Assembly (NCBI GenBank): GCA_002104945.1
Contig: MCFH01000025.1
Coordinates: forward strand, 310,001 to 374,000
Length of the DNA: 64,000 nt
Origin: Piromyces finnis finn
Taxonomy: Eukaryota > Fungi > Neocallimastigomycota
Reading direction: 5' to 3'
In this document: piece by piece, positions 9,111 to 17,206 of the stretch
How positions within the stretch are numbered: the first letter of the stretch is position 1
Layout of the letters: each line of letters begins with the position of its first letter
Position numbers and translations under genes: made by a program
Notes under the pieces: model-generated
Database searches by the model: none
Told to the model about the DNA's origin: nothing
The model's input: the letters and a program-made list of their open reading frames with translations, nothing else

Positions 9111-11992
9111 TTTTATTTATTTCTTAATTTAATTCTATTTTTTTTTTATTTTTTTTTTTATATTTTTTACCAAATTTTTGGTTTAATATTAAAATTTAGA
9201 AAAAATATTGTTATTTATAGTGTTTTTGAGAATTATAAAATTATATTAAAATTGTTTTATATTGATTTTAATATATATAACAAATATATTAAATATAACG
9301 GGAAACAAGTGAAATAAATCAAGAATATTAATTCTATAATATAATAATAAATTAAATTGTACTATGAAAAAAGAAATAAATGATATATTGTGCAACCTAT
9401 AAAATTCTAAAATTTTTTTCTTTAAGCATATATTGATATAAAATAAATAGAATTAAAACAATATATTAAACTTTATTCGTATTAAATTTCAAACTTTATT
9501 TATTATATTAATTAATATTATACTTTTAAAAGATAATACAGTCATTAAAATTTTATTCTATATTGTAAAAAATAAATGATAATAAACCGAAAATTGAATA
9601 ATAATAGTAATAAGTAATGATTAATGATAGTTCAATGAAATTTTGATATGAATATTATGCAAACTTTATTTTTCTATTAAATTATTTTCTTTTACTTTAC
9701 TTTATTTTACTTTATTATTAGGTTAATACAAAACTATATTTATATTTATTATTGTTTTTTTTTTTTTAAATAAATAATTTTTTATTAGGAGAATAATAAT
9801 AATTTATTATAAAAAAGAAATAAAAAGAAATAGAATCTGAAACTTTATTAATTATATTTATGAATTAAATATTATAAATTAAAAAAGAAAATTATAAAAA
9901 CTACAATTTAATTTAAATAAATAATAAAAATTTATAGTTTAAGATTGCAAAATAATAAATACCTTCAAAAACCTATGAAAGAAAAAATATCACTTAATTA
10001 ATTAGTATCATAAGAAATATTGAACATTAAATATACTTAGAATTTTAAAATAAAAATAATTTAAAAGTAATAATAATTTGTATAAGTATTAAATATAAAA
10101 ACAAATTTTAAATTTTAAAAAATAGCTTTAACTTTTAATTATATTATTTTTTTAAAATGATTATCAAAAACTTTTTATTAATCATATATTAAAATTCTAA
10201 ATAACTTTTCATATATTATTATTAAATATAATATACTCATTTCAAATAAATAAATAGATAATATATTTATAACAAATTTAACTATAAAATGAACAATATA
10301 TTGGAAATAAATACTCTATGTTTTAAATAAATTAAATAATAATTAAAAATAATATAATTCTTTTAAAATATGGAATTAAATTCCTAATACCACTTCACTG
10401 CTATAAAACCCAAATTCTTCTTTTTTATATACCACTAGAAACATAATATCGTAAAATATAAAATTTTTGGGTATTTAAATTAATAATAAATCATTCAGAA
10501 TGAATAAATTAATCATTTATTTACTACATTATTATAATGCATGCCAAAATAAAGTTTGTTTTTGTTTTGTTTTGTTTTGTTTTATAAATATCATAAATAT
10601 AATAAAAAGAATAAACCAAAAATGTTAAATTTTACTTTTTACATTGAAAATTCAATTTTTCTATAATTTTTCTATAATTGAATGAATGATAATTTGATAG
10701 TCTTTTTTTTTTTTAAATATTAAAATCCTGTAAATTCATCTATCATAACAAATATAATAATAAAAATTACAATAAAATCTACTTATTAAATTTGTCAGTA
10801 GTATGAACACTAAAAAAAATATATATTTTTAACATATTAAATGAAAACTTGTTCAAATAATAGTTTTTTCTTCTTTTTGTTTAATAGTTGTAGTGGTGGA
10901 CCAAAAAACATTATTAGCATGAATAATTATTATAAGTTTAAAAGTCACAAAAATTTGACTCCAATTAATTTATTTAAAAGTGTATTACAAATTTTAAATA
11001 TAAATTAAAATAAAATTTGTCGATATTTATGTAATACAAATTAAATTTGTTTTTACTGTTTTAATATATTATAAAAATGGACTAGAATGAATAATCGGCA
11101 ATCCCTTTGAGTGGAAAAGAATAAAAATAAAACTTTATTCTTTTTTTCTTTTCTTCATAAAATGATTAAAATAAAAATGTTTATTTTATAATAATAAATT
11201 AGAACTGGAATATCTTTTTCAAAAAAAAAAAACTTTTAAACAATTTAAAATTTATAAACCTTTAAATAATAATAAAGTTTAATATTATGAAACAATAATT
11301 AATTAATTTAAAATTACAATTTTATATTTTATATGGTTTATAATGAAATTAAATTTATAAAATAAATATGGAAAATTTTCTATATTATATAATTATCATA
11401 TATTAACAATATAGTTGTTTTATGTTACAATAAAAAATTTAAAGTTAAATAGATACTACTTTATTAGTAATATTATGTATAATATATAATATTACAATAT
11501 AATAAATTATATACAATGTTTTAGTATATTTTAGTATATTTTAATATATTTTAATATATTTTAATATACTATATAATTATTCAAATATAATTTATAATTC
11601 ATATATAAATATTCTATAAAACAAAATTGAAACAATTATTATTTTAAAGTTGTTATTTTCACCATTTATGATTGTTTCATTTTTTTTAAAAATTTTAATA
11701 ATGATTTTAACCAATAAAAATAATGTAAAATTTTATTATTTAACAAAATTATATAAAAAAAGTTTCAAACGAATTGGATATCTTTTTATGGTGGTATTAT
11801 AAAAGAAATACACTAACGAAGATGACTGAAATGTAAAGGAATAATATGTAATGAGTATTTCTGTTAAGGTCCATTAAAACAAGAAAAATGGTTATATTAA
11901 AAATATATATATTCTTTTTCTTATAAATAATAATAAAAATACTGACTTTTTTTTTAATAAGGATTAAAATGCTATAATTAATACATGACTTT

Positions 11993-11997
11993 GTAAT
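11993..11997. repeat. Target-site duplication GTAAT (left copy)
   Basis: The same 5-mer flanks the other end at 17207-17211. Confidence 0.9.
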
Positions 11998-12214
11998 TAT
12001 TAAGAGTTGTTTAATTTAGGTTTATAATTATGTCAACTTTATTAATATATTTTATGATAAAGAACTACTTGCGTTACATTCTTCTAAAACTACATGTATT
12101 TATACATTTACATTGTGGCTTAAACATATAATCAAATACAATATATACAAATACGTTTTAATACATTTCAATACATTTGAATACATGTGACATAACGTTT
12201 TACATATTCTAACA
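11998..12214 (-). repeat. 3' LTR (217 bp)
   Basis: Matches 16990-17206 except at 12004 (g/a) and 12169 (c/t). Sense strand reads TGTTAG...TTAATA. Confidence 0.95.
12038..12043 (-). terminator. Putative AATAAA polyadenylation signal in the 3' LTR
   Basis: AATAAA on the element sense strand, downstream of the LTR TATA-like box. The motif is weak evidence in AT-rich DNA. Confidence 0.4.
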
Positions 12215-12741: not shown

Positions 12742-13129
12742 AATTACAATTTTCTTTAGAATATTAGCATAATTGTATTTCAATCTATTTGTAAATACTA
12801 ATTAATAATGGTAAAATTTTAATTAAATTCTTAATAGTTATTTAGTTTATGTATATTGAATTTTAACATTTTCTTTTAGGTGTTTTTCCTTCCTTTTATG
12901 CCTTTTGTATTGATTAATTATTCTTATAATATTTAAGAATATTTTACTTTGTATTTGAAATTTTGTTCTTTTCATTTTTACATATTGAATCTTATAAATT
13001 TTTACAATTTGAATTTCAATTCATTCTATTTATTAAGCCTTAGTTTCTATGCAATGTTTTAGTTATTTCCAATGTTTAACTAGAAACAAAAATTATTATC
13101 TTGAATTTTAAATTTCGTATATTCACTAC

Positions 13130-13141
13130 TTCCCCCTCAAA
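13130..13141 (-). other. Second, internal copy of the polypurine tract
   Basis: ttccccctcaaa is identical to 12215-12226 (15/16 when extended), 915 bp away. Confidence 0.8.
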
Positions 13142-13824
13142 TCTAGATGTTTAGTAATAAATACTTAGATTTGAAAAAGAGAAATTTAAATTTCATAAAA
13201 TTTCATTCATTTTGCATCAAATTTTCATAATAATGAATAATTTTCCATAACATATACGATAAGTATTAATACCTATATAAATAATAAATAACATATTCTA
13301 ATGTTTTCATTCATTTTTCTCAATTGCTTATCCTTTAAAATATAGTGAAATAATATTTTCATGATAATATATTTTAATGTAGTGATAATCATAGAATATC
13401 AAACTAATGAATAAAATATTCCTCAATTATGTATTTCTTTACTTCAAATTAAAATAAGTAGATATACCAGTAAAATTATAACAAGTTAATATTGTAAGAT
13501 AATGACATTTAAAATATCGATTGTTGAAGAGAATAAAGTTCTTCTAAATTATATCGAAGTCGGCTCGGTTAATTAGAATGTCAGCTAATTGGTCGGCGAT
13601 CACTCACTACGTTGAAAGTGGCGATTTATATATGAGGTTACTAAATCACCGTAAATTATATTTTAAAACGGCGTCACAACATTCTTGAATGTTGGTAATA
13701 AATAAATATGATGAATCAATGTCATCTAAATCTAAGGAGCCCTTACTATGAAGGTGCTACATTGTTATTGATGGGACCAAATTAAATATATATAGGTCTA
13801 AAACCATCATTAATAATTATCTAT

Positions 13825-13950
13825 GAATATAACTCATTTCACGCTAAGTTAAATCATGATAAGTTGTTAAAATATTATTGAATATACCCATTTCACGCTA
13901 GGTTATTCAAAGTATATATATATGTAGAATATGCTCATTTCACGCTAAGC
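13825..13950. repeat. Three spaced copies of a GAATAT-n-CATTTCACGCTA motif
   Basis: Perfect CATTTCACGCTA at 13835, 13889 and 13936. Confidence 0.85.
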
Positions 13951-14631
13951 ATTTCTAACTTTAATAAATTACCTCATTTGAAATATTTGCTATGTATATT
14001 AGCAATAACAGCCTACGGGATGAGCATTTGACCAGTAATATATTTGCTTTATAGGTAGCAATAATTTAAATAATGCTTTTGAGGCTAAATATTATCTTAA
14101 AGTATTGTTATAATGATTTAATTCAAAGAATAGTATACTGGATTAAATTATATAATACTGATTTGAGTGAAATTATCATAAAGAAATTGATTGACATTTT
14201 CACAAGGATAGTTTCAATGTTCATTGCAATAGGATATTTTATATAAACTTATCAAATAATGTTTAATTATTCTAATTCATGTTTCTAATTGTATAAATTT
14301 TATGTATTTTCTTTATGTTCTATCTTTCCTCTATGGCGGAAAGAATATTTTCTCATTAAAATAGTAGTAGTTAAAGTATTTGAACATTTCACAAACAATT
14401 TATTTACTTGAAATAAATATGTATGCTTTCAATAACAATAATGCTATTTTATGAATGTTAATAAAACTAATTCTTTTAAAATAAAATGAATGTTTGTAGG
14501 TGTATGTATGTTTATGAATATTTACATAATTGAATATATGGATTTTTAAATGATAATGAATGTAAATTGACATAATGAGTAAATCAAAATCAAATTAATA
14601 AATTTAATAAATTGAGTAAATTAGGAGAATT

Positions 14632-16176
14632 CTAATATACAATGTTTATTTGCCAAAACATTACTGACATTAAAATAATAAATACATTTGCAAGAGAAAT
14701 ATATTTGAAGTTAACAGTTCCGTTTGAATTTAAATTTAAATCATCAATACTACTTAAGCCATTATTTGTAAGATAACTTGTATTTTCATTAAGATTATTA
14801 TCGATGTAATACTTTTTCATGTCGGTATTACAATAACAAGTATCGCATATATCAGTTTGATCATTTTTGTCAGTATCATTAGGAGTACTAGTTGATCTAA
14901 TGGAATTATCAGAAATACTAGTTGATCTAGTGGATCTAGTTGAAAGGTAGTTTGATTCAATTCTAAAAATTCTAACAGGATTTTTTTCATTTCCTCTGAA
15001 ACCCCAGTCATTGGATACCACTTTAAAAGTGGAGGCGCTAATTGTCACACCGTTTCCGGCAACAATACCCATGTGATGACCATCTGTAATAATGTCACCT
15101 GGCATACTATGTTTTATACCGTAATCGCCTTCTCCTATAAAATCAAAACCAGGAACATTCATTGAATACCAATCTTTGGTACATGGTGGTCGATCAAGTT
15201 TGCTTTTTGCAGCTAAAATGGGATGCTTAAATCCATTTAATTTATTTGGAGTTCCAACATCATAACCAGAAGCTAAAATAACTTCATAGACAAATAAATT
15301 GCATTTAAATTCGTCTGCATTGAAATATACATTGGCTTTTCTTTTTGCCTGTCTACTGTTACTAAATGCCCAAGCAGTTTCACCAATATTTGTAAAAGCA
15401 TTTAAATAAATTTTATTTTGTATAGAATTACTAGATTTCGAAACTGATTCATCTATGTAAATATATGATGGGATAGGAATATTTGAATTTTCATTGTTAT
15501 CAAATGAATCACGTAATTGTCGGTTATATGTAAAATTTAATGTATCTACTGATCTTCGGTTTAGCCAATTGTCTTTAAAAAGATAAGCGAGGGATATTTC
15601 ATCATCAAATTTATATGTAATTTTAAAAGATTTCCCACTTCCAACACAAACTTCAGGTAACTTTTCCTCAACGAAATTGTACCAAAAACCTTTTTGGTTA
15701 TTCCATTCAAAATCCCAAATGTCATAACCCGAAAAATGTATTTTCACTGTGTTCCAACCTATTACAGGAATAAAATTATAATCAATATCGACACTATAGC
15801 TTCCTAATGTTAAACACCAAATACCTCGTCTTGATCCTTGTGCAGCACTTATTGTTTCTTTATTTATAATTTTATCTATCGATATTTTATTTTTAATTGT
15901 TTGAGAAAGTTCAACTAGCATATTTTTATAAGAATCAGCATTTTTCATTTCTTCTATTAATCGCGGGGAGGCGGGTACCGTATTTCCTGAATTACCTCTA
16001 TAGTGAGAAATAGCATCTCTCAAGCTTGATATAGATTTGTGTGTCGATGGTGTTACAAATCCGCAGATATTATGTATCTTTTCGAAAATTGATTCTTTAT
16101 CGAATATAACTAAACTTCTGACTTTATACAATAAGAGAAAAAAAAATAATAACTTAAGAATTAATCTATTCTTCAT
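14632..16176 (-). CDS. 514-aa secreted, probably GPI-anchored protein: colicin M-like domain plus NlpC/P60/CHAP-like amidase domain (LTR cargo)
   Basis: Intact intronless ORF. Hydrophobic signal (aa 1-21). AISHYRGNSG, LGSYSV, DIWDFEWNNQKG and SGKSFKI parallel colicin M motifs. KCNLFV...PGDIITDGHHMGIV...NDWGFR gives a Cys/His dyad. S/T linker and hydrophobic C-terminus. The ORF is certain; the domain calls are by eye. Confidence 0.7.
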   Translation of the reverse strand: MKNRLILKLLFFFLLLYKVRSLVIFDKESIFEKIHNICGFVTPSTHKSISSLRDAISHYRGNSGNTVPASPRLIEEMKNADSYKNMLVELSQTIKNKISIDKIINKETISAAQGSRRGIWCLTLGSYSVDIDYNFIPVIGWNTVKIHFSGYDIWDFEWNNQKGFWYNFVEEKLPEVCVGSGKSFKITYKFDDEISLAYLFKDNWLNRRSVDTLNFTYNRQLRDSFDNNENSNIPIPSYIYIDESVSKSSNSIQNKIYLNAFTNIGETAWAFSNSRQAKRKANVYFNADEFKCNLFVYEVILASGYDVGTPNKLNGFKHPILAAKSKLDRPPCTKDWYSMNVPGFDFIGEGDYGIKHSMPGDIITDGHHMGIVAGNGVTISASTFKVVSNDWGFRGNEKNPVRIFRIESNYLSTRSTRSTSISDNSIRSTSTPNDTDKNDQTDICDTCYCNTDMKKYYIDNNLNENTSYLTNNGLSSIDDLNLNSNGTVNFKYISLANVFIILMSVMFWQINIVY

Positions 16177-16975
16177 TTTAAAGAAGAGGTAAAAATATAG
16201 GAAGTTACAATAAACAATTGTTAAAGAATGAAAAATATTTTTATTTCAATTTTCTGAATATTAATAAGATTTATAAATGTTACTATTTAAAAGGATTTTG
16301 AAATTATATTACTTAATTGTAAGCAATTATACAAAATAAAATTTTGGATTTTATTAGCTAATTTATACTATTTGTGGTGAATAAAGTAAGTTGAGAATGA
16401 AATTCTATTGTTTATTTAATTCTAAATTTATATTTCGAATTTGTACTTTATTAACTTTGAATTTAATTTTACAATATCTATTCATAAATAGTTTCTAAAA
16501 TAATTAATTCTTTTCAATTTTGAATACTTTAATTTATTTCTGAGTTTTAGGCGTTGGTTGTATTTGAATAAAATAAATTTTATGTTGGTTCAAAATTATT
16601 TAGAGTTCAATTTGTTTTGTTTATTTTTAAATTTAAAGATTTAAATTAAAAGTTAAAAAATTCAAAATTCAATTTTAGAATAATTTGCTTTCGGAATTTA
16701 AAATTGTCTATATTATTTTAGTATAAGGAAACTTTGTTTATATCAGGTAATGTTTTTCTATTTTAGATTGCCATTTCAATTTCAAAAGTTTGAAATCTCA
16801 AATTCTAGATCTCAAAACAATTTTACCAAACATAGATAATTTCAGATTAAATAATTTAATTCTGATAGTTAGAATTTCCTACAGTTTTCTCCTATGACAA
16901 AATGTCATATCCGGCGGTTTGATTCATCTTTCAGAGAATCATTTGAGAATTAATGAGATTCTCTCTTGAGAGTCT

Positions 16976-16989
16976 TGAGACTCTTAATC
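16976..16989 (-). other. Primer-binding site complementary to the anticodon arm of tRNA-Lys(CUU) (half-tRNA type)
   Basis: Plus strand TGAGACTCTTAATC directly abuts the 5' LTR. GACTCTTAATC is the conserved tRNA-Lys(CUU) anticodon arm core (recalled). Confidence 0.75.
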
Positions 16990-17206
16990 TATTAAAAGTT
17001 GTTTAATTTAGGTTTATAATTATGTCAACTTTATTAATATATTTTATGATAAAGAACTACTTGCGTTACATTCTTCTAAAACTACATGTATTTATACATT
17101 TACATTGTGGCTTAAACATATAATCAAATACAATATATACAAATACGTTTTAATACATTTTAATACATTTGAATACATGTGACATAACGTTTTACATATT
17201 CTAACA
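16990..17206 (-). repeat. 5' LTR (217 bp)
   Basis: 215/217 identical to 11998-12214; contains four 10-bp subrepeats (atacattt-like). Confidence 0.95.
17089..17096 (-). promoter_or_regulatory. Putative TATA box (TATAAATA) in the 5' LTR
   Basis: Mid-LTR position upstream of AATAAA, consistent with U3-R-U5 order. Low specificity in AT-rich DNA. Confidence 0.4.

Follow-up and report, generated by a model that had tools for sequence, protein, structure and literature searches.

Does an anaerobic gut fungus carry an enzyme that cuts the bacterial cell wall and, if so, how is it built, where did it come from and against what is it used? The question is raised by a gene of Piromyces finnis within a 64,000-nucleotide (nt) stretch of contig MCFH01000025.1 (positions 310,001 to 374,000 of the forward strand), hereafter called the window. 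The gene is a minus-strand open reading frame (14632-16176 of the window) that encodes 514 residues in a single frame without interruption. A sequence-only reading had proposed that it carries a cysteine amidase domain of the NlpC/P60 or CHAP type, fused behind a domain resembling colicin M (ColM). We found that residues ~245-415 are, at the level of the modelled fold, a divergent domain of the NlpC/P60-CHAP papain-fold superfamily which, judged by its residues, is catalytically intact. With a probability of roughly 0.7, this domain most likely cuts the peptide of bacterial peptidoglycan, is exported and forms part of a wall-attacking set.

Fold and catalytic layout of the CHAP-like domain

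Every motif and coordinate of the sequence-only reading proved exact when checked by script. The domain (residues 252-406; hidden Markov model envelope 244-425) corresponds exactly to positions 14959-15423 of the minus strand. It contains KCNLFV at residues 291-296, including Cys292 (codon TGC, 15301-15303), PGDIITDGHHMGIV at residues 359-372, including His367 and His368 (codon CAC of His368, 15073-15075), TISAS at residues 378-382 and NDWGFR at residues 389-394.

We modelled the domain with AlphaFold (AF2) from an alignment of its sequence with five relatives (alignment A1), which gave a predicted local distance difference test score (pLDDT) of 77.7 and a predicted template modelling score of 0.77, and compared the model exhaustively with 48,161 PDB representative chains using VIA. 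Ranks 1-30 were nearly all NlpC/P60 or CHAP chains, led by NlpC/P60 of Clostridium innocuum (8er5, Z 12.0), NlpC B3 of Trichomonas vaginalis (8ev5, Z 11.8) and Acd24020 of C. difficile (Z 11.7), with the three best matches aligned over 103-113 residues at 2.2-2.6 Å. SagA and LytE (both Z 11.1) and CwlO (Z 10.8) followed, while type VI effectors scored lower (Tae3 8.9, Tse1 7.6, Tae2 5.9 and Tae4 5.4). Foldseek recovered the same superfamily with probabilities of 0.99-1.00 but E-values above 1e-3 (about 3e-3), a structure search of the ESM Atlas returned NlpC/P60 and CHAP clusters (TM 0.55-0.63), and language-model features indicated the same two families.

The placement of the predicted catalytic residues in the model is papain-like, with Cys292 (model residue 48) as the second residue of a helix (47-58) and His368 (model residue 124) at the entry of a strand (125-130). 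The family profile, built from 81 sequences, was aligned by hhalign with nine canonical PF00877 domains, some bacterial and others from this fungus; the alignment had a probability of 94.3% (E 1e-7) and set K-C-N-L-F-V over D-C-S-G-F-V, P-G-D-I-I...H-H-M-G-I-V over P-G-D-L-V...S-H-V-G-I-Y and T-I-S-A over F-I-H-A. Cys292 and His368 thus fall in the catalytic Cys and His columns, as the Cys...His-x-Gly-Ile layout noticed in the sequence had implied, and Ser380 (codon 15037-15039) falls in the column of the third catalytic His ('IHA'), for which it is the putative counterpart. The conserved polar pair Asn389-Asp390 at the start of NDWGFR (15007-15012) provides alternative candidates for that third position. 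The same alignment revealed an insert of ~45 residues, specific to this family, that separates the Cys helix from the His strand.

Conservation agrees with this layout. Among the 81 relatives, Cys was kept in 75, His in 76, Ser380 in 70, Asn389 in 65 and Asp390 in 55, and the window copy retains all 24 of the 24 positions conserved across the family. All three of Cys, His and Ser380 are missing from two metagenome relatives, P0002 and P0010, where Asn replaces both Cys and His and Val replaces Ser380, as would be expected if the three residues function together. A metagenome relative, P0025, has Arg and Gln at the Cys and His positions, and in two others, P0027 and P0042, Cys is replaced by Ser while His is kept. 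These five sequences may include pseudoenzymes and a Ser-nucleophile variant.

Chance can be set aside as a source of the CHAP-like domain, because a frame of 514 codons stays open in DNA of ~27% G+C, relatives are found to E 1e-76 and all 24 conserved positions are kept. G+C content over the window is very low throughout (14-32% in 2-kb windows).

Curated libraries were nearly silent on this domain. Pfam and NCBIfam scans gave no meaningful match for the window protein, and PHROGs and PDB sequence searches, with single sequences as well as profiles, returned nothing for the domain; the sole trace, a match to RipC that covered the His motif (E 0.67), was taken only as a lead. PF00877 (NLPC_P60) did not match the window protein even at E≤10, short of its curated cut-off, and was reached by one of six fungal-type domain sequences at E 0.062. 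CHAP (PF05257, cut-off 26 bits) matched neither the window domain nor its fungal relatives, while five bacterial relatives exceeded the cut-off (L014 at 32.6 bits, L012 at 30.4, L004 at 29.4, P0099 at 28.6 and L005 at 28.0) and others scored 14-23 bits. The link between the window domain and a curated family is therefore transitive, and the assignment of the sequence-only reading could not have been obtained by routine annotation. It nonetheless holds at the level of the superfamily, since the top fold-search matches belong only to that superfamily, the hhalign columns agree with it and bacterial relatives pass CHAP.

Membership of this superfamily does not by itself fix the substrate, and the domain could instead act on a gamma-glutamyl or amide compound, on a lipid by acyl transfer of the LRAT type, or on wall or surface proteins of the fungus itself. 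Enzymes with substrates other than peptidoglycan do occur in the superfamily (Gsp amidase and trypanothione synthetase-amidase, both at VIA Z 6-7), and the atypical Ser at the third catalytic position, the family-specific insert and the existence of eukaryotic relatives that lack a signal peptide would suit such a role. We regard it as quite unlikely, given that the closest structures (Z 10-12) are without exception endopeptidases or amidases that act on peptidoglycan and that bacterial members are fused to the peptidoglycan-binding domains OmpA and LysM.

Bacterial toxin modules and a eukaryotic branch

To what, then, is the domain related? A profile search covering 1.84 billion representatives returned 458 clusters at E≤1e-3, 131 of them at E≤1e-10, with a best E of 1e-76. 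In a scan of bacterial and archaeal genomes, we found 12 bacterial loci from at least seven phyla, among them Thermodesulfobacteriota, Cyanobacteriota, Verrucomicrobiota, Armatimonadota, Pseudomonadota and Acidobacteriota, with 24-40% identity to the window domain (tblastn E to 2e-21); in the profile search, bacterial toxin modules reached E-values of 1e-30 and below. The domain was always C-terminal in these bacterial proteins.

OmpA and LysM bind peptidoglycan, and eCIS_core marks the cargo of contractile injection systems. Bacterial relatives are fused to each of the three (OmpA in L004, LysM in L005 and eCIS_core in P0099), and P0064, which is named 'RHS repeat-associated protein' at its source, consists of an Rhs core with a CHAP-like tip. 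Whether relatives would include the tips of bacterial polymorphic toxins, a question posed with the sequence-only reading, was thus answered in the affirmative. On the metagenome contig that encodes P0064 as an orphan Rhs tip (L027, from JGI, 4617 nt), an unannotated gene of 203 residues starts 7 nt downstream, followed by a YkuD/Tlde1-like gene and then an unannotated gene of 253 residues, an order that resembles a series of toxin-immunity cassettes aimed at the wall. Small open reading frames with an N-terminal hydrophobic stretch, as read by eye, also lie directly downstream of the toxin-like genes at L003 and L004; toxins active in the cell envelope usually show this layout, which makes these small genes candidate immunity genes. 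The combination of a C-terminal tip and a downstream candidate immunity gene was found in bacterial relatives only, and no immunity-type gene adjoins the fungal gene. Bacterial members of the family would accordingly serve as toxin modules delivered against other bacteria.

These contexts also bear on whether the fungal enzyme might be a genuine Cys-His hydrolase used for feeding, one that digests wall fragments or muropeptides of dead bacteria for carbon and nitrogen. Fold and residues would be the same, anaerobic fungi are degraders with large sets of secreted enzymes, and the many relatives without a visible signal peptide would suit the processing of imported fragments. The bacterial relatives, found at an Rhs tip, among eCIS cargo and next to candidate immunity genes, speak against feeding, as do the pairing of the fungal domain with a toxin-type ColM-like domain and the lysozyme genes carried by the same cassette (see below), and we consider it unlikely.

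Relationships within the family were assessed with unrooted maximum-likelihood trees. In the first, a branch with 99% support in the Shimodaira-Hasegawa-like approximate likelihood ratio test (SH-aLRT) separated a 39-row clade, which holds the window domain and mostly AT-rich-type sequences, from a 42-row clade that holds all rows from bacterial genomes. In an enlarged tree, to which closer relatives were added and in which rows were labelled by genomic context, nine eukaryotic-context rows and eight bacterial-context rows were split by a branch with 100% SH-aLRT support. A eukaryotic setting is genuine for some of these rows at least, including P0045, which carries a hevein-type chitin-binding domain, and P0261, from a Rhizamoeba saxonica transcriptome. 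We also considered that the AT-rich relatives might simply be bacterial; this was rejected for P0202, whose 20-kb contig (17% G+C) carries kinesin, SYS1, Syja_N and PQ-loop genes.

The eukaryotic branch was most likely acquired by horizontal transfer. The direction from bacteria to eukaryotes is favored because members of the superfamily belong to bacteria and phages, because bacteria alone have its substrate and because the bacterial side of the family spans many phyla.

Two further relatives have other architectures. P0005, a metagenome protein of 761 residues, combines about 10 Cys-rich repeats with two domains of papain-like type, one a central Cys...His module and the other a CHAP-like domain at the C-terminus. 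P0030 (397 residues; L045, a Logan contig of 28% G+C) joins an unrecognised N-terminal region of ~240 residues to a CHAP-like domain, and its gene adjoins a gene for a BspA-type leucine-rich repeat protein.

The gene, its partner domain and its repeated element

The window protein begins with a probable signal peptide (~residues 1-21, 16114-16176), recognised in the translation by a basic start and a Leu/Phe-rich core. It continues with the ColM-like domain (~residues 44-201, 15574-16047) and the CHAP-like domain, and closes with a low-complexity linker rich in Ser, Thr and Asn that includes a small Cys cluster (residues 407-483, 14728-14958) and with a tail (residues 484-514, 14635-14727) in which small residues are followed by a hydrophobic end, as in a glycosylphosphatidylinositol (GPI) anchor signal; all of these features lie on the minus strand.

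The N-terminal domain was delimited from its alignment (A2) with P0003 and the standalone relatives P0165-P0169, to which it is 50-60% identical, and from a structure model; its nearest relatives are standalone proteins of 167 residues with 58-60% identity. For this poor model (pLDDT 56), VIA placed ColM-family chains at ranks 1-4, namely pectocin M1 (Z 6.1), PaeM (4.8), the C-terminal domain of BtpeA (4.7) and syringacin M (4.5), and Foldseek gave only colicin M or pectocin M in its top six, none of them significant (E 0.17-0.66). The Pfam colicin M family (PF14859) did not match the domain, nor was the ColM catalytic signature seen in its sequence. With ColM-family chains first in the structural ranking but at a low score on a poor model (Z 6.1, pLDDT 56) and with no Pfam match, the ColM-like identity that the sequence-only reading gave to the partner is plausible but weakly supported.

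We also asked whether the fusion exists elsewhere. Among 191 proteins fetched, which are part of the 458 clusters, the window protein alone matched both domain profiles. A word search returned no full-length relative of it, and no standalone ColM-like and CHAP-like genes stood side by side on the metagenome contigs examined. The fusion was thus found in the window protein alone within that set, which answers the question for part of the clusters.

The gene lies between two direct repeats of 228 nt on the plus strand (11987-12214 and 16979-17206) that are 97% identical to each other and resemble long terminal repeats (LTRs). Its last 32 codons and 3' flank (to position 14729) recur with 95-98% identity at eight other loci of the fungal genome (L032-L039, on contigs C200, C189, C182, C43, C157, C46, C222 and C35), for which we searched 232 contigs totalling 56.46 Mb. 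Six of the eight genes that share this tail encode a Cys-rich module with a GH24 lysozyme, and two a Cys-rich module with a ColM-like domain alone. At these loci the common downstream flank (~13079-14729) is 90-98% identical and the common upstream flank (~16299-16660) up to 95% identical, while the coding middle differs. The flanks are multi-copy by read depth, and two P. finnis proteins, P0003 and P0007, have a C-terminal tail identical to that of the window protein.

The same genome contains further wall enzymes. On contig C212 (13.7-23.8 kb, L023-L026), four tandem genes encode canonical NlpC/P60 domains (PF00877, 75-81 bits), each preceded by a signal peptide and two Cys-rich modules, and modules of this kind are also found on the metagenomic relatives P0005, P0016 and P0061. 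One of the four copies has a TAG inside the match. This company of wall-attacking enzymes, in bacteria as well as in the fungus, is the main argument for peptidoglycan as the substrate of the window domain.

The arrangement raises the further idea of a eukaryotic counterpart of polymorphic-toxin systems, in which an LTR-type element would bring a promoter region, a GPI-tail cassette and flanks that stay constant around a middle slot, itself swapped among GH24 lysozyme, ColM-like and CHAP-like domains. The window gene would then be a unique recombinant with two warheads, whose CHAP-like hydrolase opens the mature wall and thereby gives the ColM-like domain access to lipid II in the membrane. 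We offer this scenario tentatively, and think it somewhat doubtful.

Residence in a repeated element could also mean that the gene is inert cargo, intact because it is young and neither expressed nor used. The 97%-identical repeats and multi-copy flanks would fit, as would the stop codon in the other CHAP-like copy of this genome, and the RNA origin of the available runs is a guess. Variation among strains tells against inert cargo. Contigs of four public runs cover the gene, and those of three are identical to the window copy. The fourth (X2, another strain) keeps the frame; it has six substitutions, two of them synonymous and the other four non-synonymous but conservative, and within the STR repeat of the linker it lacks 9 nt in frame (window 14924). 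X2 also shows a 2-nt insertion in a T-run of the signal-peptide region (window 16137) at a depth of 3, which may be an assembly error. Contigs of runs X3 and X4 cover the coding part and have gaps just upstream, as RNA would, although this is suggestive only, the type of run having been guessed. Since the window copy also keeps all the residues conserved in its family, we find it very unlikely that the gene is idle cargo.

Weighing the reading, and comparison with known systems

Under the reading that we prefer, Cys292 at the start of its helix would act as the nucleophile, His368 on the following beta-sheet as the base and Ser380 at the third position. The domain would be exported by the signal peptide, tethered or released through the GPI-like tail, and, joined to the ColM-like domain, would act as an amidase or endopeptidase that cuts the peptides of bacterial peptidoglycan, as one member of the fungus's set of wall-attacking enzymes. 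The gene is probably used against neighboring bacteria. The analysis shows the modelled fold, the arrangement and conservation of the residues, the toxin relatives in bacteria and the common cassette; from these we infer the substrate, secretion, antibacterial role and any synergy with the N-terminal domain, and likewise that the paired domains might attack both the wall precursor and the mature wall, as suggested earlier. If active, the enzyme would bear on how slow-growing fungi hold ground against rumen bacteria, and would be a candidate lytic enzyme of unusual design.

Several observations weigh against this reading. The domain has no match in curated libraries or among PDB sequences, such that its membership depends on a predicted structure, on an alignment between profiles and on homology that is transitive, and the juxtaposition of Cys292 and His368 is implied only by superposition of the model on solved enzymes. 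Ser at the third catalytic position, rather than His, Glu or Asn, is unusual, and any catalytic role of Ser380 would be hypothetical. The only paralog of the window domain in the genome (L002, contig C188, 277068-280565), which is Cys-rich in its N-terminal part, ends in a tail of its own and lies within a related LTR-flanked element, is broken by an in-frame TGA (~1573-1575) at the codon aligned with the invariant Trp269 and is probably a pseudogene. The closest relatives of both domains are standalone proteins of 156-175 residues with no visible signal peptide, encoded on contigs of 17-22% G+C (L046-L051), one of them clearly eukaryotic, and these sit uneasily with the idea that the eukaryotic clade as a whole acts against bacteria outside the cell; either prokaryote-style gene calling missed upstream exons, or they are cytosolic forms with no obvious antibacterial role. 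The four public runs were only guessed to be RNA, and their contigs attest presence rather than transcription. Finally, the literature searched held no enzymatic data for any member of this CHAP-like family.

To our knowledge, few eukaryotes have taken over bacterial wall-cutting toxins, and the cases are well studied (tick Dae2, Trichomonas NlpC/P60 and transferred lysozymes). Dae genes are known in ticks, other animals and protists. In our literature search we found no report of Dae genes in anaerobic fungi and no paper tying Neocallimastigomycota or Piromyces to NlpC or CHAP domains. Peptidoglycan, lysozyme, amidase and bacteriocin all go unmentioned in the main survey of horizontal transfer into anaerobic gut fungi. 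Other papers record that Piromyces has GH24 lysozymes as well as a phage tail lysozyme, and one preprint describes a polymorphic-toxin immunity gene acquired by gut fungi.

The known system closest by sequence homology is that of bacterial CHAP (PF05257) toxin modules, with which the window domain has K-C-N-L-F-V-Y-E, G-D...G-H-x-G-I-V, T-I-S-A and N-D-W-G-F-R in common. The fungal branch differs from these in falling below the Pfam threshold, in forming a separate clade with eukaryotic neighbors and in the lack of an adjacent immunity gene, and its predicted signal peptide and GPI-like tail stand where the bacterial toxins have a delivery domain. Canonical NlpC/P60 DL-endopeptidases (LytE, CwlO, MepS, RipA, SagA and Acd24020) are the best structural matches (Z 10-12, root-mean-square deviation 2.2-3.3 Å over 103-122 residues) and have Cys and His in the same columns. 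Compared with them, the window domain has no PF00877 match, has Ser for the third His and an insert of ~45 residues, and has K-C-N-L and R-P-P...D-W in place of D-C-S-G and L-P-R.

The likeness to Tae and Dae, as in tick Dae2, is one of story and fold superfamily, in that an interbacterial peptidoglycan-amidase toxin was taken over by a eukaryote. Structurally, Tae scores (Z 5.4-8.9) lie below those of the NlpC/P60 matches, and we do not place the domain in any of the four Tae families. The present case also differs in its fungal host and in the fusion of the domain to another toxin-like one. For that partner, the colicin M-like toxins that degrade lipid II (ColM, pectocin M, PaeM, syringacin M and Bacteroides BtpeA) are the top structural matches, though weak ones. 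The NlpC/P60 proteins of Trichomonas vaginalis (6bim, 6biq, 8ev4/8ev5; Z 11.8 and 11.6) offer a parallel in way of life, being laterally acquired papain-fold wall hydrolases of an anaerobic eukaryote that lives among bacteria; those are canonical NlpC/P60 by their PDB titles, whereas the window domain belongs to a distinct CHAP-like family and stands in a different architecture. Set beside these systems, the domain adds a new branch, not yet curated, to a known superfamily, and both its host and its fusion are new: the host lineage is that of the anaerobic gut fungi, the family is a CHAP-like one that curated models miss, in which Ser holds the third catalytic position and one branch extends across eukaryotes, and the fusion with a second toxin-like domain is unique among the proteins fetched.

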